Origin: Leidyana gryllorum EB-2025a
Taxonomy: Eukaryota > Protista > Apicomplexa
Assembly (NCBI GenBank): GCA_048772705.1
Contig: JBLWGC010000104.1
Location: forward strand, 992,001 to 1,056,000
DNA: 64,000 nucleotides
Reading direction: 5' to 3'
Numbering within the stretch: the first letter of the stretch is position 1; every line of letters starts with the position of its first letter. The notes below the pieces were generated by a model that was not told where the DNA came from, did not search any database, and worked only from the letters and a program-made list of their open reading frames with translations. This document shows positions 25,601 to 57,200 of the stretch, piece after piece. A program made the translations under genes and the position numbers.

Positions 25601-28600
25601 ATGGTCAATGGCAAGGTGGTAAGACTGAATGAAGAAGATAAGCGCTTTAGATACAATCTCGGTGTACTGAGTCATGGCGAGCCGGCGGTGCTGTGCTGCC
25701 GGCTAGGGGGTGCTCTGCTAACCTTGTTGGCGGGGACGTCGATGGTGAGTGGCTGGATATAGTGTGGGCGTATATGACACGTGTAAAGTCGTAATCTTCA
25801 GCCTGTCTTTATCTCGTTGTTCGGTAACCTAATCAACGTTATTGGCGGCTCCAGTTCGCGATCTGTTGGCTGGTATGTAGCACTGCAAGGCATATTGGGA
25901 GCCATCACGATGCTCCTATGCTGGGTCGGTGGCTCGCTATTGGAGATGTCCGCTGAACGCCAGAAAGTCCACATACAGAGGGATTTCATTAAGTCAATGA
26001 CGCAACAGGAGGTACGCTGGTTCGAGGATTTCAATGCAGCCGAGCTGGCGACCAAGTTTAGCGAGTCGGTCAACTTTATCCGACACACCACCGGCTTAAG
26101 GTTAGCTCAGGTATTCTACAGCGCTGGTACTTGTGTCGGAGGCTACTCAATAGCGTTATATCGCAGCTGGCAGTTGGCCTTGGTTATGATGTGCTGTGTC
26201 CCTCTATTAGCCATATTCGCCTTCCGTCTGCTCACCATGGCTGCCAGGGCGGACCGAGCGGCGCGAGAAGCGCACAATGGCGCGGGCACCATCGCCGAAG
26301 AAGCTTTCCACCTGATCCGTCCCGTAGCTGCCTTTGGCTTGGAAGGAAGGATGGTCAAAGAGTACACCTCGCAACTGAACAGTTCGTCGAGGTTTGGCAA
26401 GAAGGAAACTCGAAACATTGCTGGTGCGCTTTCAATGTTCGTGCTGGTGCAGTTCCTCACGTGGGCACTTGGCTACTGGTACGGAAGCAAACTAGCCGCC
26501 GACTCCATCGAGCGCCGGGGCCTGGAGGATTGTTTGGAGGCGGGGAATACAACTTGTTTCGACGGCGGAGGAACTCTCGCTGTCTTCTTCTGTATGTTGT
26601 TGGCCACTCTCAGCTTGGGTCACGTTGGAGCTAATTTGAGTAGTATCGCGCGGGCATCAAAAGCGCTATTCGAAATTGAGAACCTCACGTCAAGAGAACC
26701 CAGCCCCCTGGATCCCACCTCCGAAAGAGGGCTGCAGAAACCTCCACACGGTGGACCGAGGCTCCTAGGGACAGTGGAATTCTCTCATGTACGTTTTTCG
26801 TACCCTTCGCGTCATGATGTCACTGTGTTGTCGGATCTGACGTTCACGATCGCCCCAGGTGAGATTGTAGCTTTGGTGGGCGCAAGCGGATGTGGGAAGT
26901 CGAGTATCATAAAGCTGCTGGAGCGTTTTTACGACCCCGAGGCTGGCTCGATCTTTGTCGACGGGGAAGATCTCCGCAATTACAATGTCAAATGGATCCG
27001 CAATCAGATCGCTTTGGTGCATCAAGAGCCTAAGCTCATTGATGGGACCATTGGGGACAACATTCGCGCGGGCCTTTGGGGCTCTGGCACTCAGGCTACG
27101 ACCGAACGTGTTGTCCAAGCGGCTCGAAGCGCTCACGCCCACAACTTCATCATGGAGTTCCCCGACCAATATAATACGATCGTCGGCATTGGTGGTGGAC
27201 AGCTTAGTGGGAGTCAACGACAGCGGATCGCGATTGCACGTGCTATCATTCGAAACCCGGCTATTCTTATACTAGATGAAGCTGCGAGTGCACTGGACAC
27301 GGAGAATGAGAAGCTCGTTGTGGACACACTAGAAGCCTTGGTAGCTGAGATGAAGATCACTACAATCTTTGTGTCTCACCGCCTAAGTACCATACGGAAA
27401 GCGGACACTATCATAATGCTAAATAGTAATGGGACCGGGGGTGCATATGTGGCTGAACGCGGCACCCACGAGGAGCTGATGAAGGATCCTGAAGGCCTTT
27501 ATCATCAACTCGTCAGACGCAACGAAGTAGAGGATATGTATCATCCTGGGCGGAGGCCCCACGAGACCAAAATGGGTTTCCCAAAACCCAATCTACTCGA
27601 TAGCCCCATGGGCACCCCTAAACCAATGAATTTGACTCGCAAATGTTCTCCACCGTTGGCGACGCATACTCATCGTTCGCGACCACGAAAGATGTGGGAT
27701 GTCACCTGGCTGGAGTTGATGTCATTGATCCGACGGTTCCGTGTTCACATGGCTGTGGGATGTGTTGCGGCGGGCGTGGAAGGTTTGCTTTGGACGTGTC
27801 ATGCGATCAGTTTGGGGAGCTTCACTGCCGCCTTCTTCTCTCCCGACATATCTGATATCCGGACCGCTGGCTTCAAATGGACCCTGGCTTGTTTGATTTT
27901 TGGAGGCGTGATGAGTTTGGCGTCGTTTCTACGGCATTATTTGTTGGGAAATGTTGGCATACGTTTGGTCAAGTCACTGCGAAAAGATACATTTGTGAAT
28001 TTGATCCATCAGGACATGGCGTTCTTTGATGATCCGGGGAACGCCGCGGGTGATCTAATAGAGTCATTGACGATGGATGTGATTGAGGTGAAGAAGTGGG
28101 TGGTGGACAACACCGGAATGTGGGTGCAAAACACCGTCGCCATTTTATGTGGAATTGTGCTGAGCTTTCGAGCAAACTATAAGGTGGCGGGGTTGTGCTT
28201 GGGAGGTTTCACTATTCTGGCTCCGATGACGTGGCTGCAAAGTTTGTTGATCAACAAAAGCCGACAGACCGCTTCTTCAACCACTCGGCACGCTGCTCAG
28301 ATCATCAATGAGAGCGTCATCAACATTCAAACCCTTACTGCTTACTCTCTCGAGCATCGAATGATGTTGCGACATGAGGCAGCTCTCGACAGGGAGCGAG
28401 AACACATCAAGTTGCGAACCAACATAACTGGTGTGATGTTTGGCCTAATCAAAGGCGCCAAATATGTCATTGAGGCTTTGCTGCTGTGGTATGGTGCGAG
28501 ACTGGCGCGGTTCAATGAAATAGAGATCGATATGTTGATGCGCACACTCTTTGTTTTCGTCATGGTGGCCTGGTCACTTGAACAAAGTATGCCCTTTTCG

Positions 28601-34029: not shown

Positions 34030-37000
34030 ATGAGTATTGATGACGCTGCGACCACTCCTGTGACCTCTACGGGTAGCCAAGTAGACGAATCAAGAGCTGC
34101 CTCCCGGCGTACCTTTAGTCTCCGAGTCTTCCGATATGGAGGGCCGAAAGACAAACTATTGACTGCGACAGCTGTGACATTGAATTTTATAGCTGGACTG
34201 GGATGGGTAAGATGCCCTACTCTGGAGAATCTCTATTAAGCATTTCTGCAGCCCGTCTTCCTTCTACTGTATGCCCAGATGGTCAGTGTGGCAAACGGGG
34301 TCCCAGGCCGAGATCTCTTCTGGTACTTCAAGTTGACTATGATTTTTGGTGCGACTGCATTTGTAGTTTGCTGGTTCGGGGCCACCACGATGGAGTTGGC
34401 TGCGGAACGTCAAACACAAATGATCCGATCCGAATTCATTCGAGGAATAACCAGACAAGAAATGGCCTGGTTTGATGAGTTTGGCGGGGGCCAGCTGGCC
34501 ACGAAACTGAGCGAATCGGTCAAACTAATTCGAGAATCCCTGGGTCTCAAGACCACTCAGTTGTGCTACAACGTCGGAGTTTTCGTTGGATCTTATATTG
34601 TATCATTTGCAAGAAGCTGGAAGATAACGTTGGTGGTATCTTGCTTCTTACCTGTGTTGATATGTTGCAATACCCTTATGGTACGGTACCTGGCGAAAGC
34701 CGGAGCGGCTGGCCGAGAGGCTTACAGTACTGCTGGTACTGTAGCTGAGGAAGCTTTTGGCGCCATCCGTACGATTGCCTCCTTGGGTCTTGAGAGCCGA
34801 ATGATCGATGACTTCACAAAACATTGTAATGAAAGTTTCCGACACGCCGTGAAAGGAGCTCTAACCGTTGCGATGGGATTGGGTATCAGTCTGTTCTCCG
34901 ATGTCTGTACACAAGGAGTGGGCTTTTGGTATGGCACCAAACTCGTTGCCGATGATCTACGTGATCACGGATACGAGGCCTGTATGACCGATCCGAATGT
35001 CCAATGTTTCGATGGAGGCCGAGCAATCCTTGTCGTCCACACATTGATCACTGCCGTATATGCCATTTCTCAAGTGGGTCCCTGCTTGGCAGCTCTGGCT
35101 CGAGCTTCGAGTGCTGTGCTGGATATCGATGAGCTCGTATCCAGACAGTCATTGATTGACCCCGAGAGTGAAGCTGGGAGGAAGGAAGCACCCGATGGGA
35201 CTCAACGGCTTAAAGGAGAAATCGAGATCAACAGACTCAAGTTTGCTTATCCAACGAGACGCGAGAAGAATGTCTTCTCGGACTTGAACCTCACAATCCC
35301 AGCCGGCAAGACTGTAGCGATAGTCGGCAGTAGTGGCAGTGGGAAGAGCACTATAGTTCAGCTGCTCGAACGCTTCTACGACCCACAAGAAGGCTCTGTC
35401 TCGATCGATGGGGTGGACGTACGACAATATAATGTCAAATGGCTCCGCAACCAGATGGCATTGGTGTCTCAAGAGCCACGCCTCCTGGCTGCGAGCATTC
35501 AGAACAATATCAAGACAGGACGACTGGGGATCGAGGAAGAAGTCAGCGATACCCTTATGGTGTCGGCAGCCAAGAACGCGAACGCCCATCAATTCATCCG
35601 CGATATGCCCAAGGGATACGACACATACTGTGGCGAGGGTGGAGGCCAATTGAGTGGAGGCCAAAAACAGCGGATCGCCATCGCACGAGCTATCATTCGC
35701 GATCCAGCTATCCTCATCCTCGACGAAGCCACGAGCGCCTTGGACAATGAATCAGAGAGAATTGTTCAAGACACACTGGACAAAGTGGTTGCAGAAATGA
35801 ATAAAACCACCATCATAATTGCCCACCGTCTCAGTACGATCAGGAAGGCCGATCTGATAGTCGTCCTGGATGATCCAACGGGAAAAGGTGCTGCAGTCGC
35901 CGAGAAAGGGACCCATGAAGAGCTGATGGCAATCGAAGACGGGCTATACAGAAGTCTGGTGCTGAATCAGGTCACCGACAAGGATGAAGGGAGAGAACAA
36001 CAATTTGAAGACCTTCTTGAAAACTTTGTCGATGACTTACCGAAACGCGAGCTCAGCGCATTGAGGCTGCGAAAGAAGTTTTCGACGAAAGAATCCTCTT
36101 CTCGTCATCCGAGTGTCCTCTTGAATACTGATGCCTCGCCACAGATCGACTCTGCCGCCGCATCCAAGGGGGTGGAAGGAAATGCTGTTGGATGGTGGCA
36201 GGTAATGAAGGTACTGAGACCATGGTGGGGTACCATGTGCTGGGGTGCCCTCTCAGCCATCATTCACGGCACTTCGTGGCCCGTCTTCGCTGTGGTAATG
36301 GGAAAGTTCATTCAAGTGCTCTTTGCTGAAGACGCTGATGAGGTCCGATCTGGTGGAAACCTATGGGGACCTCTGTTTTTTGCCTACGCTGCACTGATGG
36401 CTGGATCTCTGGTGGCTCAACAATTCTTCTTTGGGAAGAACGGTGCGCGGTTAGTTCAGGTGCTCCGACTCCGAACATTCCGAAGTATAATGTACCAAGA
36501 CATGGAGTTCTTCGACAAGCCGGAGTCTGCCACTGGAGACCTGAGTGAGGCGTTGAGCGCGGATGTTGTCGTACTCCAAGGATGGGCCGGAGAGAATATC
36601 GGTGTCTACATTCGATGTTTGACTACCGTTGTGGTCGCAACTGTCATCAGCTTCCAGGCGAACCTGAAACTGGGTGCCGTCTCGTTGGCAAGTTTCTGTA
36701 TATTGGCTCCCGCACTTGTCTTACAGTACAAGTTTGGTGGCTACTCACGGGCAGAAGATACGGGGAATCGAGGAGAGGGACGAGAGAGCGCTGGGTTTGT
36801 GGTCGGGGAAACCATATCCAACATCAAGATGGTGGCCGCATACTCTCTCGAGCAACACATGATCAGTAGATATGACAAAATCGTGGACCAAGACTACGTT
36901 GTGGGGCGCAAAAAGTGTTTCATACTCGGACTCGCCTATGGCTTCGTCATTGGAGGACAATGGTATGGACAAGGATTGGGTTACTGGTATGGATCCACGA

Positions 37001-38025
37001 TGGTCCAGAATGGAGAGGTTTCTGCCGAGACAATGTGGCGAGCAGTGTTGAGTTTCATCCTAGCGAGCTACTGCATCGCTATTGCTATGGCTTTCAGTGT
37101 GGACAATGTTGCCGCTCGGCGAGCAGCGGCCCGTATTTGGGAACTGAATGAGCGGAAGCCCAAAATCGATGCTCAAAGCTCGGAAGGCCGGGAAATCAAA
37201 ACGATGTCAGATCACCTACGTTTTGATAATGTCTACTTTCGATACCCTCAACGTCCCACCATTCCGGTCTACGACGGTCTATCCTTTGACCTGCAGAAAG
37301 GTCAGGTGGTGGCCCTTGTTGGCCCGAGTGGATGCGGGAAGTCCACCGCAGTGCAACTGATTGAGAGATTTTACGATGTCTCTGATGGCGATGTGGAAGT
37401 GTACATGGAGGGCATGAATGTTGTTGGGGCGACAAGTGGTGGTGGCGGCATCAGCATCGATGGGGTGGATGTTCGCGATCTCAATGTACAGTCTCTCCGA
37501 TCGACGATTGGATTGGTGAGCCAAGAACCTGTGCTTTTCGACCGTTCTATTGCGGAAAATATTGCCATGGCGAAAGAGGGGGGCGCCAGCATGGAGGAAG
37601 TGGAGAACGCTTGCAGATTAGCCAATGCGCACAGCTTTATCAGCACACTACCAGAAGGCTACAACACCAGTGTGGGAAAACGTGGCAATAGTCTCAGTGG
37701 TGGACAAAAGCAAAGAATCGCCATTGCTCGCGCACTCATTCGGAACCCTTCCCTGTTGATCTTGGATGAAGCCACGAGTGCATTGGACAGCGAGAGTGAG
37801 AGGATCGTTCAAGCGGCATTGGATGATCTGCTGGAGAATCATCGGACCAGTACCATTGTTATTGCTCATCGGCTGTCGACTGTCCGCAATGCCGACAAGA
37901 TCGTCGTTCTTGTGAACGAGGAGGGAAAGGGGGCCAAGGTCGCCGAAGTCGGTACTCATTCCCAATTGATGGATATTCAAGACGGTGTCTATAGACGACT
38001 GGTGGAGATTGCCCAGCAACAATGA
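34030..38025 (+). CDS. Full-size ABCB/MDR transporter, copy 3 (canonical motifs)
   Basis: Exon 1 34030-34206, intron 34207-34251. Walker A GSSGSGKS and GPSGCGKS; LSGGQKQR and LDEATSALD in both NBDs. Confidence 0.97.
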
Positions 38026-38366
38026 ATGATGCGACAAGGATTTATACAAAATTGAACATGTTTTCTTTCCTAATTCTGTGAATGGCAGTTGCGCGCTGAA
38101 CTGAGTACCGAAGCGTTCGTTAGTCGGCATACACACACTCTCTCTCTGTTGATCTTGTTGAGCACAGTAGAAGCCCGGTCGGGAAGATTAAGGTGACAGG
38201 GAGCATAACTTTGTTTGATTCCTCCGTTTGGCGGCCACTATACTTACTGTCGACGTGTTTGTAATGCAGGTGAGCATCAATCAAGCCTTCTAGAGTACGT
38301 GATCTGTCCCACATGATGTTAGATTTTGTGCAGGCGTGGACTTCGTTTTGGACCCTGTGAACGTGT

Positions 38367-41300
38367 ATGAGTCCCAAGACCAGCAATGAGGGTAGTCTCG
38401 CTGGGAAGTCTGGCGATCGAACAGACTTCATCGGCAAGTCTCCTCAGCAGAAAATGAAGAATGTGTTCAAATACTGTGATGCTGTAAACTGGACTCTTAT
38501 GCTTGCATCAGCCACTTCGAGCGTTGTGGCTGGACTGGCTTGGGTAAGTGAGCTCGCTCTTACGGCACTGTCTCTTATCACCATTTTCCGACAGCCGCAA
38601 TTCCTCTCATTCTTTGGCAGTATGGTGACTATTGCGACGGGGTTCAGGAACGACCATTATTTGGAGTGGTATTTGGATGCGACATTGATACTGGGAGCTT
38701 GTGCTTTTATTATGTGTTGGTTTAGTGCGACGAGTATTGAGATTGCTGCTGAACGACAGACCACGGTGATCCGATCCAAGTTTGTTCATGCTATTGCTCG
38801 ACAAGAGATGGGATGGTTCGACCAGTTCCAAGACGGGGAATTGGCTGAGATATTCAACAACTCTTTACGAATCATCCGCGAATGTGTTGGACTCAAGTTG
38901 ACCCAAGTCTTTTATCACAGTGGAGTTGTCATTGGTTGTTACGTGATGGCTTGGCGTAAACAGTGGAAAATCACACTCGCTGCCACCTCCACCGCTGTAC
39001 CGCTCGTTATCTGTGGTGTCTGGGTCGCTCGGTTCTACGTCTCTGACGAGAATCGCGCACGATCCGCATACCAGTCTAAAGCTGGTCGATTGGCCCAAGA
39101 AATGTTCTCGGCCATTAGAACTGTTGCCGGACTTGGGATGGAGAGTCAAGTTGTCGAAGAGTATAACACGGCTCTGGGCCGCGGCGCTCGCACCCAAAGC
39201 AGGAAAGCTGTCTGGAGAGTGTCTCTGGGTATGGGAGGAATGATTTTTCTCGACCTGATTACTCAAACTGTGGCGATATGGTACGCCAGCAACTTTGCAG
39301 CGCGTGACGTCGAAAAGTACGACCTCGAATCCTGCATGACCGACCCTGCGGTCAAATGCTTTGATGCCGGGAAGGTTCTATCTATTATGGTCTGTCTGAT
39401 CACAGCGGCTTATGGCTTGGGGCAGATCGGCTGTACCCTCTCTACCTTCACTCACGCATTTCGAGCGATGGAAAAAATTGACAGTTTCGTATCTCGACAG
39501 TCGAAGATCGACCCGGAAGACCCCACGGGCCTGCGACGGAGTCCGTTGGCTGCGAATATCGCTTCGAGCCAGACTCCACCTACAGGTCAGCAACCCCGTG
39601 GTAAAGAGCGAAGCAGTCTCAGTACTCTTGCGCCGCCCAATGTCAGCTCGTGGGCCACTCTTGCCGAGGAGAGTTCTCCGAGCCACTTCACCACCACTCC
39701 TTCCGAACCGGGAGAAACACTACAAGGCGGTGGAGACTGTCTGCGGGGACACATCGAATTTCGCAATGTAGCCTTCACATATCCCTGTGCTCCGACGAAG
39801 AAGATTTTTACCAATCTCAATCTAAAGATCCCAGCGGGGAAAACTGTCGCCATTGTCGGAGCGGATAATTGTGCAAAGTCATCTATCGTACATTTGCTTG
39901 AAAGATTTTATGATCCTGACTCGGGATCAATACTTATTGATGGGGAGGATGTGCGAATGTACAATGTGAAATGGTTGAGAAGCCAGATGGCCCTCATCTC
40001 GCAAGAACCTCAACTGTTTTCAGCCAGTATCAGTGATAACATCAAGTCGGGCCGCTATGGTGTTGATATGGATGTTGATGGTCTCAATGACATTGACATC
40101 ATTCTGGCGGCCAAAGTAGCCAATGCCCACAGCTTCATCGCGGACTTACCTGAACACTACCAAACCATTTGTGATAATGAATTAACCGTTAGACAACAAC
40201 AACAGATTGCGATCGCCAGAGCGATCTTCCGCAATCCTTCAATACTTATTATGGAGACCCTCGATAACGACACAGCGAAGATTGTCCAAGACAAGCTGGT
40301 GAAAAAGCTCACCACGACTCTGGTCATCAGCCATCATCCAACTGCAGCTATCCAGAATGCCGATCATATCATCGTTCTCGAGAATCCTGACACCAACGGA
40401 ACAATTGTTGCTGAAGAGGGTACTCATGACGAACTCATGGCGAAGCCGGACGGGCTTTACCGACATTTAGTGGAAACTTACCACCTTCTTCATCCCAATT
40501 TGACTTCGAACAAGGGAGACGCCAACGAGAATGCCTGCGCTACAACCAAACCGACCCCTCCGCCCAGCCGATTCGCACGCTTCAAGACGAGAAAGACAAA
40601 CAAACCGACCGATGAAGGTGGGCGAAAGTGTTTCGGACCGCCACAGTTGGTCCCCACTGTGCCTAAAAGTATCTATGCGGATATGGCGAGCGACGAGGAA
40701 TGGATTGAAGTGGCCGAAGGCAGCCGCGAAGGTTATTGGAGGGCGTGTCGAGGGGAAGCTGACGGCGGTCCCGATGACGGTTCCTCAACCGCCAAAGCTA
40801 AAGCTCGTTGCCACGCGCTGATCAACGAGGTTGGCCAATTTGTGTGGTTTGTTCGGGTGATGAGATTGCTGGATCGAAGGTGGAAGGCCATAGCAGCTTT
40901 TGGATGTGTCTCGGCTTTCATATCTGGTTTCCTATGGCCCTTATTTGGGGGTCTTCTTGGGCGATTTACTGCTGCTTTTTACAATGGCGAGCCGGACGGG
41001 ATAAGATCGTCTGCTCGATTCTGGGGTCCCGCCTTCATTGGCTACGCAGTTATTATGGGACTGACACAATTCGGTCTATACTACTTCTTTGGCAAAATAG
41101 CAGTGAGAGTCACGGAGAGATTACGGAAAGACATGTTTACCAACATTATACATCAAGAAATTGAGTTCTTCGACAACCCCAAATATTCCGTCAACAGACT
41201 TAATGATGTACTATGTGAAGATATTTTGACCATCAGGAGATGGCTCAGTGAAAGTATTGGAATGTATATACGGTGTATTGTCAGCATTCTCGTTGCACTC

Positions 41301-42761
41301 GTTGTTGGCTTTCAAGCCAACGCCAAACTGGACGGCATCTGTTTCGCCTGCTTCTGCGCATTCTCGCTAGCGTTGATATTACAGCACAAGTTTGGCCACT
41401 TTATGGGATCTCACAACTATTTCAAACGAGGGCTGCGCCATAAGAGGACCACCACACTCGCCATCGATGGCACAAGTGCCCATATGACCGTCATCGCGGC
41501 ATTCTCTCTTGAAGTGTATATGTGTCGTCGGTATGATCGGATAATAAACTTTGAGTACAAGAGAGCGAAGAGACAAGCCTTTGTGACAGGTGCCACTTAC
41601 GGATTGATCATGGGAGCTCAGCACTATTGCCAGGGCTTAGGCTACTACTACGCTAATCACCTCATTGAGCTGCGAGAGATCAACATTGATCAAGCATTGC
41701 GATCAACCAAGGCGTTCATCTACGCTGCCAATAGTGTGGCGCAAGCCCTTATGCACGCGGTCGAGGGAGCGGTCCTGTGCAAGGCTGCAACTCGGATTTG
41801 GCATTTGAAAGATCGCCAGTCCAGTCTCGATACTCGTTCTGACCCGGAACCGCCATATCCCCATCCGCTCATTGACGGATTGAAGGCCACGACCCCCGTG
41901 GGCGCAAGATCGATGGGAGCCTTTATTCCGACGCCCAGTACGATGACTCCTCCGACTCGAGCAGCCTGCGAGCTGAAATGTGACGCCCATTCCCCCAGTC
42001 GGACACTCGAATGCACCGCCCTCCATTTCGACAACGTCACCTTTTGGTACCCTCATCAGCCCGAAATCGTAGTGCTGAGAAATCTAACATTCGAAGCCAA
42101 ATCGGGCGAGCTCACAGCTTTGGTCGAACCAGACGAATGTGGAGGCAGCTCTGCTGCGACTGACTTGGTGCAGCGATTCTACGACATTTCACCGCACCGT
42201 GCCATCAATCTGAGCCCTCACAAAATGATTGGCCCCCCGTCTGTACAGGGCACAATCACTATCGGTGGGGTTGACATCCGGGATATGGGCATAGCTGATC
42301 TACGATCCAAAGTCTCAGTGATAGACTCTTCTACATTCATCTTCGATCGATCAGTGGCAGAGAACATCGCGGCGGCTGTTGGTGGGACGGCACCACTCGA
42401 GCAGATTCAGTTGGCATGCCGCATTGCTAACTTAGATACCGTCATTTCGCAATTGCCTCAGGGTTATGATACCAACGCTGTTGCAGCCCAGCTGACGGAG
42501 GGACAAATACAACGCCTGGCAGTCGCACGAGCAGTTTTGCGGAACACCGAGATACTGATAGTGAATGAGACATCCCGAGGTTTGGATAACGAAGCACAGA
42601 TGGTGATCCGGGGAACAATTGACCACCTTTTGGAGCTGCGAAAGGCCGAGTACCCCTCAGGTGTCACAATGATTATGTCGCATCCCTATGTGGCGTTGCA
42701 AACGTCAACGGCTGATAGGGTTGTAATGATGTCACAGGATGGAGATCCTTCTGACTACTGA
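38367..42761 (+). CDS. Full-size ABCB-like protein, copy 4, with both NBDs degenerate (candidate pseudo-ATPase)
   Basis: In-frame intron 38544-38594 at the same position as in copies 1-3. NBD1 GADNCAKS/LTVRQ/ILIMET; NBD2 EPDECGGS/LTEGQ/ILIVNET. The ORF is intact. Confidence 0.9.
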   Translation: MSPKTSNEGSLAGKSGDRTDFIGKSPQQKMKNVFKYCDAVNWTLMLASATSSVVAGLAWVSELALTALSLITIFRQPQFLSFFGSMVTIATGFRNDHYLEWYLDATLILGACAFIMCWFSATSIEIAAERQTTVIRSKFVHAIARQEMGWFDQFQDGELAEIFNNSLRIIRECVGLKLTQVFYHSGVVIGCYVMAWRKQWKITLAATSTAVPLVICGVWVARFYVSDENRARSAYQSKAGRLAQEMFSAIRTVAGLGMESQVVEEYNTALGRGARTQSRKAVWRVSLGMGGMIFLDLITQTVAIWYASNFAARDVEKYDLESCMTDPAVKCFDAGKVLSIMVCLITAAYGLGQIGCTLSTFTHAFRAMEKIDSFVSRQSKIDPEDPTGLRRSPLAANIASSQTPPTGQQPRGKERSSLSTLAPPNVSSWATLAEESSPSHFTTTPSEPGETLQGGGDCLRGHIEFRNVAFTYPCAPTKKIFTNLNLKIPAGKTVAIVGADNCAKSSIVHLLERFYDPDSGSILIDGEDVRMYNVKWLRSQMALISQEPQLFSASISDNIKSGRYGVDMDVDGLNDIDIILAAKVANAHSFIADLPEHYQTICDNELTVRQQQQIAIARAIFRNPSILIMETLDNDTAKIVQDKLVKKLTTTLVISHHPTAAIQNADHIIVLENPDTNGTIVAEEGTHDELMAKPDGLYRHLVETYHLLHPNLTSNKGDANENACATTKPTPPPSRFARFKTRKTNKPTDEGGRKCFGPPQLVPTVPKSIYADMASDEEWIEVAEGSREGYWRACRGEADGGPDDGSSTAKAKARCHALINEVGQFVWFVRVMRLLDRRWKAIAAFGCVSAFISGFLWPLFGGLLGRFTAAFYNGEPDGIRSSARFWGPAFIGYAVIMGLTQFGLYYFFGKIAVRVTERLRKDMFTNIIHQEIEFFDNPKYSVNRLNDVLCEDILTIRRWLSESIGMYIRCIVSILVALVVGFQANAKLDGICFACFCAFSLALILQHKFGHFMGSHNYFKRGLRHKRTTTLAIDGTSAHMTVIAAFSLEVYMCRRYDRIINFEYKRAKRQAFVTGATYGLIMGAQHYCQGLGYYYANHLIELREINIDQALRSTKAFIYAANSVAQALMHAVEGAVLCKAATRIWHLKDRQSSLDTRSDPEPPYPHPLIDGLKATTPVGARSMGAFIPTPSTMTPPTRAACELKCDAHSPSRTLECTALHFDNVTFWYPHQPEIVVLRNLTFEAKSGELTALVEPDECGGSSAATDLVQRFYDISPHRAINLSPHKMIGPPSVQGTITIGGVDIRDMGIADLRSKVSVIDSSTFIFDRSVAENIAAAVGGTAPLEQIQLACRIANLDTVISQLPQGYDTNAVAAQLTEGQIQRLAVARAVLRNTEILIVNETSRGLDNEAQMVIRGTIDHLLELRKAEYPSGVTMIMSHPYVALQTSTADRVVMMSQDGDPSDY

Positions 42762-51200: not shown

Positions 51201-54200
51201 CATAGACCCGTCAAGCAAAACCAGAACCCTGCAAGTCGCCATCTCAGCTCTCAAAGTCGGTGTCACAATGCTTACAGATGGTGCTGTGGAAGCGAAGTGC
51301 GAAGTTCCGGACGTATTGGTTCAAACTTGGAACGAGACTGAGCGATTCGTTATCGTTCGGACACCGCGAACCACAGAACTATGCCAAAATGACGCATGGC
51401 GGTGTGCCTTCCGGGGTCATCCGCTCCAAGACTATGATGACGTACAATGTTGCCAAGCATCGGCGTACGATGTGGGTGTGCAAGACTCTCCAGATGACTA
51501 CTACGACCGAACTGCTGGGAGCAATCCAATGCTACCATTTCTGGATGTCAGTGTGCTGATGAAGAAGAATAGTCCGATTAGTGTTAGTATCTCTCTCTAC
51601 CGCGCTTTGGAGGTGTTCTGGGACAGGGCGAGTGTGGCAGCTCTCAAGACCTTCGTGGCATCGTTCACAGCGGTCACCTTATCTGAGGAGGGTACAGAAG
51701 CTTTACACTTACTGTTGGAGTCTATCAGCAGCGGCTCAATAGATGGGGACAGCTATCTCGGGAATCCGAGTCGTGCCAGCGCTTGGGGCGACTTTGTCGG
51801 CGAGCTCGTGTCGAACCCGAGCCCCTCGCAGTATGAGGGACCCCTGAGCGTAGCCCTCGATGTTGCGATCAAGGCTCCGGTTCGCGTTTGGATGTACTCT
51901 CAAGGGTCCAAGGCTTTCATGGCACAATTCAGTCACTTGGGATTGTCCCTGGGCATGCGTGAAGATCAGGCTTTGATGGCGATTAAAGGTAATCTTGGAC
52001 CTCTACAGTGTCTGGACGCCCGTCACGGACCCAAGCTCCGATGGCTACTGAGCCCTCTGGAGGGTGTGGAAGAATCTGCATCGGTATCGTTCGACGTAGA
52101 CCTGCTGAACCATGCTGTGATCTACTCGGATGACACAGTCACGGACCCTGGGGTGTACGTGGATGCTCGTGTTGGTCCCTGTCACGTAAACTTTGCGCTC
52201 TATGATGTGCTTAGCTTGTGGAATACCTTCTTGTCCGAGGTGCTGGGGGCCATAACCAGTCGACCGAACATTCTATTGAAAGTGGACGAAGCCGAAGCCC
52301 GTATTGCTGCCTCTGCTTTCCTCAATTCGAGTCTGGCTGACCGAATCTTCTTGGACAATGTGGCTGGTCTCCATCCCAGTGATCTCAAATCCCTCTACCT
52401 TTCGATCTTGTGGCTAACCCGCCCAACATCTCTATTTCTAGAAGACGCTGTCCGTAAGTTGTCGTTTGCTCGCTTGTCTTCACCCATCCATTGGCAGTAC
52501 AAAACTTCTTGTATCTCTTCGTAACGGGTCTCCGCGAGATTGGCCTGGCTCCAATCACCCCTCGAATGGCCGAGAAATTACGAGATTGGGGGCGGACTCT
52601 CTGTGGCACTAAAGTGTTTGGCAAGACATCGTGCGCAGCTCGGCTGGTGGGATTGATAGCCGACATCCCGAGTTGTCCTGGCGAGATCGGACTCGATTAC
52701 GACCACTTCCGACTACGAATCGGGAATCTGGTCATCTCGAATATTCCCGGCTACCTCAAATCACGGCTGAGTCAAGAGCTGCTGCCTTATGAGGCTGCGG
52801 TTTCTCTGGCTCCAGACATCATCGGGTAAGAGTCGACTGACTTCTGTCTCTCTGACCTTTCTTTGCCCGCTGGACAGTCGTGGAGTGAGCCAAAATGCTG
52901 AGAAAGCGGATCGATACACTCCATACGAGCACAGTCTCGTGATAGACAAATTAGATCAGCACTTTGACGTCCAAGGAGACATCGCAGAATGGGAAGAGGC
53001 CCATCATCATCCGGACTCCTATGCTGGATCAACGTACCATCGGTGCTTTGGATATTTCGAGTACTTTGCATTCATTCTCCGAGCCTTCAGCTTCACCTTC
53101 CGCTCGGGCGGTCGCGACACGATGTACGGACTGAACAATCTGGATGTCTCGTGCTCTGTCAGTGACGCGATGGGCAATGTTAAGGATGTTCTGAAACCCC
53201 CCTTGATGATCCAAGCCACCTTATGGCCCGGTGCGAACGGATCGGACATTGCAGCGCGATTCGATCCGGCGGCACTCGAATGTTTGATGGGAGTTCTATT
53301 CCGGAACATCCTTGCTGCACCGAAGGAGGAGGCAACTCCGCTACCCCAGCCATCTGATATTGCTGATCGTATGGACATTCTCGTGGGGTTGGCCATGTCC
53401 CCGATCAAGATCGAATTTTACGAGGAGACTCTCAAAGTACCTTATCAGTTCAGGATTGAAGACATACAGGTAAGCCGGCCGATCCACTTTGAAGCTCACG
53501 ACGTTGACAGCTAGGCGTGATGCTGTACACCAAAGGCGGCCTGCAGCTGGGCGTAGATCTCAAGACGATCAGTGTCAGAGTTACAGGCGCGGATGACGAG
53601 CCCGATACTGTCGCAATAATGGGCTTGGGGGTGTCTCTGGACATGGGTCCAGCAAAAGCCGCCCTCACGCAGACAGAGAAACCCACCATGGCCCCCCTGG
53701 GTCACCACATGGTGCAGGGATGGCATTGCAAACCGATATCTTCACTTGCCGACATGGACACGTTGAAATTGACCAATTGCCAGCTCAAGTCGATCTCAGT
53801 GTCACTGAGTCCAATGACCGTCAATATGCCATTGGGGAGGATTAACCCGTTCGTAAATGTCTTGCTGGGGAGCATCATCCCGTCAGTACTGAAAGGAATG
53901 GGCGATCCTGAAGCCGAGGTTACAGTGAGCAAAGCCGCTGATCCTCCGTCCCTTTTGTGCGCTACCGTGGGAATGGAGGAATGCACGATACAGGCACACC
54001 ACGCCTCCGAGATGGAAGTGGGACTGGTGACGCCTCGAATGCAGTTGGACTTCACCTCGACGACCAACAATGCCCCACTTCCATCTCAGACCGTTGTCAA
54101 CTTTGCTTACCCAACCGACAACCACCCATCGCGTGCTTTGCACTTATCAACCGCACGGTACACCGACCCCACTTCGATAGCGCCCCCAGGCTTCGTCGTC

Positions 54201-57200
54201 ACATACACTTCACGGATGAAGACACCTGAAGTTGTGTCTCATGAGGTACAAATGACGGTGGAGGGACCCTGGCATCTGGCGGTGGACGAAGAACTGATCG
54301 GCCAGGTGAAGAGGGTCGTGAGGTGTCTTCAGGGGTTGAACGAGCAAATGCTGCCACGAAGCATCGACGAGATTGAAGGGTCCGCCCAGCCAGAGGAAGA
54401 AGAGGATCTCATCTGGTTGGCCCCGTCTCCCCTGACATCTCAACTACCAGAAGCATCAGAAACACCGGAAGCACCGGAAACCACTCGCGACGAAGTTGCT
54501 TTGGCGGTCCCAACAACGACTCCAGCGAACGAACTCAAAGTTGCGGTGCGTGTACAAGGGGGATGTGTGTTGGGTCTCACTACTGGAGCTCTCCACTCGG
54601 CGTTGAACTGGGACAGTGAGAGTCAATCTTTGGTCTCAACGCCGCTGGCACGCATCAACGTCGGAGAAGTTGGCGCATTACTGAGTACCACTGACGCGAA
54701 AATACAGATGACAGATGCGACCATTGCCCTGTGGCATCCAGATGCAATGACTTTCGAGCCGCTTCTGGAGGTAGTGTCGACTTTGGTATTGCAAGGTCAG
54801 CTGGGACCGCCTGAACGAGTGGCTGTTCAAGCGCTCAATGAGGAGCCGTTGCTCGTGACGGTCACCCCGAATACCTTGCGCGCAGCTATGGCGGTCCCTA
54901 AGCTGCTGAGCGAGAGCGGGCCCACAACGCTTCCACAAGCGACGGCTTTGACAGGTTTCATTTTGAGGAATGAGTCCAGTCAATGTCACGAGATTTCGAT
55001 CTGCCTCGACTCGCTGCAGGAATGGGCGGCGAAGAAGGGTTGTATGTCGCGGCTGTGGGACGACCAACTGTTCCCAGGAGAGTCCAAACGGATTTGGATT
55101 CCATCCAATGTGCACATTTTCTGGCCAGCTGAAGGTCTTGCATACAGAATCATTATTCGCCATCGACGATGGGGATCGATCTCCTTCACAGCTGATCGGT
55201 TCTTCTCCTATATGACTCAGGATCCAGACTCCCTCAGTTTCCGAGATGGACAATTGCTGATCACCAAGCCGGCCACCAGAGGAGACCGAGAGTGGATACC
55301 GGAAGTCCTTCTGTTGACCCAAGACACCATTGTATCGAATGAAACCGGGCGGTCTTTGCAAATTATCTGGAAGGGCGAATCAGTGTACGTGGAGTGCAAA
55401 GATCACTCGAAGATTTACGTTCCGCACAACAGTAAGCGTCCTTCTGCGCCATTTCAATCCAGTGGCTAACCTTTCAGCTGAGGTACTTATCCGTCATTGC
55501 GATCGACCCCTACCCGGCAGTCTACAAGCGAACATGGACTCCAGCATGGCCACCTTGGAGTGGACCGAGGAGGACGCCGGGTCTCACGGGTTCATTATGG
55601 TCCACACCCAGAGAGAGTTAGTACCGCACTCTCAGCAGACACGGACTCGAATCTCATTGTCGGCTCCACTCGAAGTTCAGAATTGTACATGTCTCCCGTT
55701 GCAGTAAGCAGTTCTGTTGTCAAATTTTGATTGCGGTCCATGCAGAGTTGTCCTAACCGGATCTTTCGGTGAGGCAGTGTGCGCCCCAGACGCATGTGGA
55801 GATCCCGTGCTTTTGTTCGGCCTCGCTCAAGAGAGCAAGACAGAATTGGGAGTACGCGTGGGCGACTGGCATGGAGCTGTTCTCATTGATACGATCTTCC
55901 GGTATCAGCGGAAGGGAGAGTTGTCGACTTGCGAACTCCCTCTTCAATACACTGGGGAGAGTATGGGAACTGGAGTCGGTCCCACCTTGCGGGTCATGCT
56001 GACTAATGCTGGCCGAGGTGAATGCACTCTATTGGTCATCACCTTCGACGTCTGTATCATGAGCTCCTGGCCAATAACAGAAGTGAATTTGTCGAAGAGT
56101 GCCGTCCTTCCCTTCGAGAACCACCTTGTGTCTCCTGCTATGGCTGACCAGATGACGAGACTGATGGGCCCGCATTTCTATATGTACGCACTCACGTACG
56201 ATCATCTAAGGATGCTGTCCATCGATCTGCGGGTCACTACATCGGTTGAGGGCGTCGCCGCATTGCGATTCTTGGGCACCGATATGAGGAAAGCAAAGGC
56301 AGGATCTGTTCTCGACGGACAGATAATATCGTGGGAAGAGTGTAACACATTCCAAGATCGCCTCGTGGAGCCTCGGTCCATCTTTCGCATGCTCGACGAC
56401 GACGTGACAGCTTGTTTCGTGTCACGCCGTTGTGCCGCCCAAGTACCCAAAATGTTCGCAGCTCGTTCCACCTTCTGTGTCGTCAACAACTCGGCTCAAC
56501 CACTCATGTTTCGGAGACATCTTGACGAGTCATCTATACGCGAATGTGCACCCAACTCTTGTATGGACTTACCCATTCGCGAGGGCGAGGCGGGAACTGA
56601 GTTCCTGTCATTCGCTCCCGTCCAACTTCCTTCGGTGGATGACTCTCCATCATCGACGAGCAGAGTGTGTACATGGTGTACGATGAGGTTGCTACCATTT
56701 GACGGCCAACCGAGAGCTTTCAATGTAATGTCCGTCGACCATCGGTCGACTTACTATTGCTTCGCTGTCAGTTGGGAATGGCTTCCAACAGCAGGCTTTG
56801 CTTTGGTGATAAGTGACTCTCAAGCCGTGTCTCTGTCGCTGCCCTACGCATTTGCACCCGACTTCCGAGCTTCCAGACGTGTGGTGTCGCTCCACTTGGA
56901 GTGCAAATGGACGGGCGAAAGTACAACTGTGGTAGCGGGTGTCAACGATCCTCCCATACCTTTCGTTCCTATGACCGAAGACTATGCGGCCACCGGATTC
57001 ATGATTTCCACAGATGTCGACGAGCCTCGGCCGATCCATTTGTCGCAGATTCCTGATCACGGACGCTTCGTTCTGGATAGAGAAGCCTTCCGAGAAGCGA
57101 TGCCCAATGAAGTCGCTTTGGCTACCGCGATTCATTCCCCGACCGGTGGGTGTGACCGCTGGGTCGTTCGGAAGATTGAGGTTCGCGCCAGCGACTCCAC

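Follow-up and report, generated by a model that had tools for sequence, protein, structure and literature searches.

A 64,000-nucleotide stretch of the Leidyana gryllorum EB-2025a genome (contig JBLWGC010000104.1, positions 992,001 to 1,056,000 of the forward strand; hereafter the window, with positions counted from its first nucleotide) contains, at 25601–42761 (+), five co-oriented genes in the order ABCB-1, ABM, ABCB-2, ABCB-3 and ABCB-4, that is, four genes for P-glycoprotein-type full transporters and, between the first two of these, one short gene for an ABM-domain protein of bacterial type. We consider it likely that the locus is a lineage-specific tandem array of four ABCB genes into which a bacterial ABM gene was inserted by accident, and that the four transporters now differ in role: two would be ordinary pumps, one would hydrolyse ATP at a single site and one would no longer act as a pump. 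The locus is best described as an expanded gene family in which two pump variants are unusual, rather than as a proven detoxification cluster, and it combines phenomena of known kinds (that is, tandem P-glycoprotein expansion, transfer of a bacterial gene to a gut protist and exporters with degenerate ATP sites). Gene anatomy, motif states, phylogeny and the bacterial origin and amelioration of ABM are documented by the sequence, as is the lack of an ABM–ABC association in bacteria; the protein activities and the chance placement of ABM are inferred. The gene order and common strand given in a preliminary description of this DNA were confirmed by Pfam searches and by reading of the open reading frames (ORFs), and the 41- and 49-nt gaps flanking ABM (29515/29557 and 29850/29900) were found as described there.

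A species-specific burst of ABCB genes

Gene models and intron bounds were read by eye from the sequence and are predictions based on sequence and homology (Table 1); ABCB searches, alignments and trees used exon 2 only, and exon 1 was read separately. Each of the four ABCB ORFs encodes two ABC_membrane domains (PF00664; E values of 1e-61 to 8e-88 across the four ORFs) and two ABC_tran domains (PF00005; 8e-30 to 8e-67), arranged as transmembrane domain (TMD), nucleotide-binding domain (NBD), TMD and NBD. The ABCB1/P-glycoprotein full transporters (for example, mammalian ABCB1, Eimeria ABCB2, Besnoitia ABC.B1 and the ABCBs of gregarines) have the same organization, and the array copies share 36–49% full-length identity with them. 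In all four predicted models a single phase-0 intron separates exon 1 from an exon 2 that opens on a proline, which aligns with the LP/LMMLVFG proline in the first transmembrane helix (TM1) of mammalian ABCB1; the position earlier assigned to this intron, just before the TM1 proline, was accordingly upheld in each copy. Exon 1 of ABCB-2, ABCB-3 and ABCB-4 carries the motif RVFRY.

The best matches to the array copies are ABCB1/ABCB11-like proteins of gregarines, coccidia, plants and animals, and the nearest relatives are those of gregarines (47–49% identity for Gregarina sp. and 45–46% for Blabericola and Lankesteria, with coccidia at ~40%). The host is an apicomplexan, most likely an insect-gut gregarine, and the earlier supposition of a gut-type parasite is borne out by these closest relatives. 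In a maximum-likelihood tree, the four array genes and the copies on contigs C12, C202 and C221 of the same genome form one species-specific clade (support 100/100) of at least eight copies, as had been expected of a phylogeny of these pumps. Within it, ABCB-1 groups with ABCB-2 (97/93), and ABCB-3 groups with ABCB-4 and the C202 copy (100/100); the terminal branch of ABCB-4 measures 1.16, against 0.36–0.40 in its sisters.

The proposal that the array arose by local duplication from one ancestor therefore stands in part. The lineage-specific clade and the shared intron agree with it, but ABCB-1 to ABCB-4 do not form a clade of their own: such an exclusive clade was rejected by the approximately unbiased (AU) test (p 1e-59), the C202 copy nesting beside ABCB-3 and ABCB-4. 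The array has exchanged copies with other locations in the genome.

The paralogues on C12 and C202 carry the same intron (53 nt in each), and in the closest ABCB from outside this genome (P0057, on contig L050, which is possibly cDNA and not genomic) the sequence is continuous at the intron point. Presence in the C12 and C202 copies together with absence from L050 indicates that the intron marks the burst of this lineage. An intron common to L050 was rejected: tblastx matches begin at the exon 2 boundaries, yet the L050 sequence is continuous. We suggest that a young, species-specific burst gave rise to at least eight ABCB copies, all with the same phase-0 intron, and that this burst was nested in a genome-wide ABCB expansion that spans five or more tandem arrays or clusters. 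The L050 gene itself (L050:2911-6845, from Logan run SRR31860986) is 49% identical, lies on a 6.9-kb contig with a GC content of 45% and probably belongs to a related gregarine; the end of its second NBD (NBD2) appears as an ORF of its own (101 aa), suggesting a frameshift or an intron at that point.

Beyond the array described here (on C104), the genome has ABCB arrays or clusters on C2, C12, C230 and C143, at least four in all. Among the other ABCB copies of this genome that could be read, several are fragmentary, and the motifs that were found agree with the consensus. The tandem array on C2 (C2:138000-156000) comprises at least four ABCB-like genes, with ~40–58% identity to ABCB-2 by domain, and its frames are split over several ORFs through introns, frameshifts or decay. 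An ABCB pseudogene with up to eight stops in one match lies at C202:305142-308692, ~7 kb away from the intact paralogue on the same contig, and forms a contrast to the open frame of ABCB-4. Two ABCB N-terminal segments on C143 (C143:4582-5637 (-) and C143:39825-40877 (+)) give near-identical blastp results (equal in identity, aligned length and coordinates, and both 135 bits) and the same Pfam score; they resemble an inverted duplication or else a duplicate introduced by the assembly.

In the pgp clusters of nematodes and the ABCB tandems of plants, whole ABCB genes were duplicated head to tail and then diverged, and the present array is of this kind. It differs from them in its extreme packing (spacers of 148–341 nt), in the foreign gene inside it and in one member that is predicted to be ATPase-dead at both sites. 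A literature search returned no paper on gregarine ABCB arrays.

Degenerate ATP sites in two of the four pumps

ATP-site motifs were read from an alignment of the four copies with animal ABCB1, Eimeria and Besnoitia ABCBs and three gregarine ABCBs, and the earlier division into two canonical copies, one asymmetric copy and one doubly degenerate copy was confirmed. The Walker A, Q-loop, signature, Walker B and H-loop motifs of ABCB-2 and ABCB-3 all match the consensus in both NBDs, a feature shared with ABCB1-type transporters, and we suggest that these two copies are ordinary ATP-driven efflux pumps. Judged by the same motifs, ABCB-1 is deviant at one site and ABCB-4 has lost both, so that these two fall outside the ABCB1-type consensus; the array copies differ from ABCB1-type transporters further in forming a species-specific clade with a private intron.

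In ABCB-1, the signature of the first NBD (NBD1) reads LSGSQ (27203–27217), and the Walker A motif of NBD2 reads GPSGCGRST (28823–28849), with Arg in place of Lys. The Arg codon is CGA, which is two changes from a Lys codon, and the substitution is thus not a single-base error. Both deviations fall within one composite nucleotide-binding site, NBS2 (that is, the NBD2 Walker A motif with the NBD1 signature), and both catalytic Glu residues are retained. We propose that ABCB-1 hydrolyses ATP at site 1 (NBS1) only, with NBS2 probably confined to binding. Asymmetric exporters with one degenerate ATP site include ABCB11, the ABCC family with CFTR, TAP1/2, TM287/288 and yeast Pdr5, and according to a review of degenerate sites, it is invariably NBS1 that is affected in the full-length ABC proteins of humans (PMC7756269). 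ABCB-1 resembles these proteins in that its deviations are confined to one composite site while the other is consensus (PMC7756269), and differs from them in that the deviations affect NBS2 and spare the catalytic Glu; ABCB-4 differs in being degenerate at both sites.

The changes in ABCB-4 extend over both NBDs. Its Walker A motifs read GADNCAKS (39858–39884) and EPDECGGS (42126–42152), its signatures LTVRQ (40182–40196) and LTEGQ (42492–42506), and its Walker B motifs ILIME followed by a four-residue deletion (40239–40265) and ILIVNE (42552–42578). Inserts rich in Ser, Pro and Thr lie at both TMD–NBD junctions (60 aa from 39546; 23 + 25 aa from 41841), and the best match outside its own genome reaches only 29% identity. 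A literature search found no described exporter that is degenerate at both ATP sites, which is weak negative evidence.

Such a gradation could be read as loss instead of sub-functionalization, with ABCB-4, and perhaps ABCB-1, being decaying duplicates that approach the state of pseudogenes. The branch leading to ABCB-4 is the longest of all, its NBD2 has fallen to 31–38% identity with its paralogues (against 52–72% among the other copies), its inserts are of low complexity, and this genome does contain one ABCB copy that is genuinely dead, with many stops (on C202, at ~305–308 kb). A neutral copy as diverged as ABCB-4 should, however, hold many stops or frameshifts, as that pseudogene does, whereas the ABCB-4 frame is intact over 4.3 kb and 1447 codons, with intact splice signals, strong Pfam matches in both TMDs (E 1e-61) and an NBD1 that is still 47–56% identical to those of its paralogues. 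We regard decay as improbable. The reading that we prefer is that selection has kept the frame open while the ATP sites were lost, which suggests a role other than pumping: ABCB-4 would hydrolyse ATP at neither site and might serve, for example, as a regulator, sensor, passive carrier or scaffold. Given the 1388 open codons of exon 2 on a branch three times longer than those of its sisters, ABCB-4 is probably functional, and it is probably a member of the family by descent but not by mechanism.

A bacterial gene within the array

The product of the small gene between ABCB-1 and ABCB-2 matches the ABM family (PF03992) with 73.1 bits against a cut-off of 23.1 (E 2e-20; profile positions 4–77 of 78) and is the sole ABM protein encoded in the genome. 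Its N terminus coincides exactly with the start of the bacterial homologues in the alignment, and it keeps all 16 of the 16 invariant columns in an alignment of 18 sequences of the subfamily. That the gene is of bacterial type, as first described, is borne out from several sides. Every match in a word search was bacterial or unnamed (49/49), and the five match contigs that were inspected are all bacterial (with neighbours such as Sigma70, Omp85, aspS and nitroreductase). In a set of one genome per prokaryotic species, 360 bacterial relatives were confirmed by tblastn, the nearest of them from Dysgonomonas, termite-gut Bacteroidales metagenome-assembled genomes, Apibacter and Neisseria (44–63% identity); the neighbours of the protein in a protein atlas are 100% Bacteria, and the ABM tree, discussed below, agrees. 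Gregarine transcriptome proteins yielded no match, a metagenome scan with the ABM protein found only two relatives (~51% identity) and no close orthologue, and no paper on ABM in apicomplexans was found in a literature search.

The gene has ameliorated to its host. Its GC content at third codon positions (GC3) is 0.536, compared with 0.53–0.59 in host genes and 0.22–0.40 in the Bacteroidales copies, and its codons score a log-likelihood of -1.11 with host usage and -1.36 with donor usage. Its neighbours, at distances of 41 and 49 nt, are genes with introns, the contig exceeds 1 Mb in length and no bacterial flank is present; a search around the gene for a target-site duplication or bacterial flank gave only short matches at chance level. 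Contamination or an assembly chimera would account for the fact that every relative of the gene is bacterial, yet neither would explain this chromosomal setting, a GC3 and codon usage that are those of the host and not of the donors, or a best bacterial identity of only 63%; we consider such an artefact very improbable. We interpret ABM as a horizontally transferred bacterial gene that is integrated in the host chromosome. Host-like codon usage indicates that the transfer is real and old, and in any case it appears not to be recent; the donor was most likely a bacterium of the Bacteroidales/Dysgonomonas type resident in the same gut, to judge from the nearest sequences.

In these respects ABM is comparable to bacterium-to-protist transfers in gut or anaerobic parasites (for example, Cryptosporidium; PMC545779), being intronless, related to bacterial genes, placed among eukaryotic genes and of host composition. 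It differs from the Cryptosporidium-type transfers in that its nearest donors are insect-gut Bacteroidales (Dysgonomonas), in its insertion inside a pump array and in having no orthologue among the other gregarine data examined.

As a single PF03992 domain of ~97 aa, ABM has the size of the homodimeric alpha+beta-barrel members of the family (for example, the cofactor-free monooxygenases YgiN of E. coli and ActVA-Orf6 of Streptomyces, and other proteins of the ABM fold such as LsrG and IsdG), and host codon usage together with the retention of all invariant residues suggests that the gene probably yields a working enzyme, which we picture as a cytosolic dimeric alpha+beta-barrel. It differs from the named members in that it matches no NCBIfam equivalog above the cut-off, the sole match being LsrG, for which the score of 30 bits falls short of the cut-off of 135. 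Of 12 matches in the Protein Data Bank (PDB) at E <= 0.001, almost all are uncharacterized structural-genomics entries (the nearest solved structures being 4hl9, 1x7v and 4dpo); the only named protein is the isomerase LsrG, and none of the 12 is named as YgiN or as a quinol monooxygenase. Where word-search matches carry the name 'quinol monooxygenase', it is a generic database label. The earlier attribution of a YgiN-type action on quinols is consequently not borne out, and quinol monooxygenase activity is best taken as a label for this protein and not as a finding.

Association of ABM with the pumps

The preliminary description suggested that this locus could be a 'modify then export' unit. 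In such a unit, ABM would oxidize a quinol or phenolic compound of the host gut and the flanking ABCBs would export the product, with the genes co-regulated or co-transcribed owing to the 41- and 49-nt spacing. The genes do share one orientation and are separated by very short spacers; ABM is the only gene in the array that is not an ABCB, as well as the only ABM in the genome; and one bacterial ABM relative is coupled to a nitroreductase. In that case (L131:2803-3706, a bacterial metagenome contig), the ABM gene, whose product is 57% identical, lies 5 nt downstream of a nitroreductase gene (PF00881), and the two look like a redox pair. The position of the E. coli gene ygiN, which adjoins mdaB ('modulator of drug activity B'), also counts in favour of such a unit.

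The bacterial contexts of ABM do not point to efflux. Among 89 bacterial ABM loci (538 kb), none contains sequence similar to ABCB-2, that is, an ABC exporter accompanies ABM in 0/89. In Neisseria, the homologue sits between ilvN (acetolactate synthase small subunit) and ilvC (ketol-acid reductoisomerase) in 34/34 loci (including L066), a conserved position inside a branched-chain amino-acid operon. In Bacteroidales, it lies upstream of aspS, often after a second ABM gene and occasionally beside a PNPOx-like protein or a nitroreductase; flavin/nitroreductases as a group are among the neighbours of the bacterial relatives. Nor is the association found elsewhere on the eukaryotic side: the ABCB arrays and clusters on C2, C12, C230 and C143 are without ABM, and L050, over its 6.9 kb, has neither ABM nor a homologue of the genes upstream of the array. 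A search for ABM–ABCB linkage in relatives, as a check of synteny, thus came back empty (L050, gregarine transcriptomes, metagenome contigs and the 89 bacterial loci), the relatives' data being thin.

The spacing itself is unexceptional. The genome is compact (237 contigs totalling 15.5 Mb); coding sequence takes up at least 77% of the window, whose spacers are often shorter than 200 nt (for example, 5, 27, 117 and 148 nt), such that spacers of 5–150 nt are ordinary in the window; in so compact a genome, the short gaps around ABM carry little weight. With no linkage found in these relatives, short spacers commonplace and a subfamily that has no established substrate, no test that was run supports the 'modify then export' unit, and the idea of a cluster 'built around' ABM likewise lacks support from the other ABCB arrays and the bacterial loci. 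We judge such a unit unlikely.

We therefore retain the reading that a single bacterial ABM gene was inserted into the spacer between ABCB-1 and ABCB-2, where chance, or the permissiveness of a duplicating region, would suffice to explain its placement and functional coupling is not needed, and that it then took on the codon usage of the host. Several points weigh against this account. The 41-nt upstream spacer leaves scant room for a promoter of ABM's own and fits read-through or shared transcription with the pumps, such that some co-regulation is plausible. By a rough count, ~25 of several thousand intergenic slots adjoin an ABCB gene, and the chance of random insertion there would be well under 1%. 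The pairing of ABM with a nitroreductase on L131 recalls the quinone and nitro-aromatic redox chemistry that efflux pumps handle as well. Finally, the ABM tree places the gene among Bacteroidales and next to a Neisseria clade, with low support around the window sequence on 97 columns only, which leaves the donor unsettled. These points could be assembled into an account in which ABM would be expressed by read-through from the flanking pumps, or jointly with them, as an operon-like detoxification unit, with ABCB-4 as an ATP-independent regulator or sensor and ABCB-1 working through an inverted asymmetric cycle (with NBS2 non-hydrolytic); we hold this to be quite unlikely.

Gene models and surroundings of the array

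The coordinates of the array are collected in Table 1. The intron of ABCB-4 is in frame and free of stops, and it may for this reason be retained.

Table 1 Predicted features of the ABCB array and the ABM gene (window positions)
Feature	Position	Strand	Description
ABCB-1 exon 1	25601..25744	+	48 codons; open from ATG; RFRY motif homologous to RVFRY of exon 1 in the other copies
ABCB-1 predicted intron	25745..25801	+	57 nt, GT..AG, phase 0; from sequence and homology
ABCB-1 exon 2	25802..29515	+	1237 aa + stop; asymmetric copy; Pfam, motif alignment
Spacer, ABCB-1 stop to ABM start	29516..29556	+	41 nt
ABM-domain gene, intronless	29557..29850	+	97 aa; PF03992
Spacer, ABM stop to ABCB-2 start	29851..29899	+	49 nt
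ABCB-2 exon 1	29900..30088	+	63 codons
ABCB-2 predicted intron	30089..30125	+	37 nt, GT..AG, phase 0
ABCB-2 exon 2	30126..33881	+	1251 aa + stop; both ATP sites canonical
ABCB-3 exon 1	34030..34206	+	59 codons
ABCB-3 predicted intron	34207..34251	+	45 nt, GT..AG, phase 0
ABCB-3 exon 2	34252..38025	+	1257 aa + stop; both ATP sites canonical
ABCB-4 exon 1	38367..38543	+	59 codons
ABCB-4 predicted intron	38544..38594	+	51 nt, GT..AG, phase 0; in frame, stop-free
ABCB-4 exon 2	38595..42761	+	1388 aa + stop; both ATP sites degenerate

The array sits within a stretch of lineage-specific orphan genes: ten large neighbouring ORFs (275–2061 aa; window 1110–58908) match no Pfam family at E <= 1e-5, and an Rfam scan of the window gave zero matches. 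Immediately upstream, two ORFs at 23377–25512 (-), which are 27 nt apart and lie 88 nt from the start of ABCB-1, have no Pfam match (E <= 0.001) and no NCBIfam match. Downstream, at 52789–55469 (+), two same-strand ORFs lie 5 nt apart (53514/53520) and could together form a single gene that a frameshift or a very short intron interrupts.

Implications

A link between ABM and the pumps, if true, would be a rare eukaryotic case in which an enzyme of foreign origin has become part of an efflux locus, and is at present only a possibility. The gene is instructive in another respect, as its putative donor is an ecological fit: the parasite has most probably acquired it from bacteria living in the same insect gut. 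Among the large branches of Apicomplexa, gregarines have received the least study, and the locus shows their P-glycoprotein family to have been expanded through repeated tandem duplication. Two of the products, as read from their motifs, would break two working rules of ABC exporters, ABCB-1 because its deviant site is NBS2 and not NBS1, and ABCB-4 because it is full-length and open in frame with no predicted hydrolytic site. ABCB-1 and ABCB-4 are, in this way, natural test cases for the role of degenerate ATP sites.

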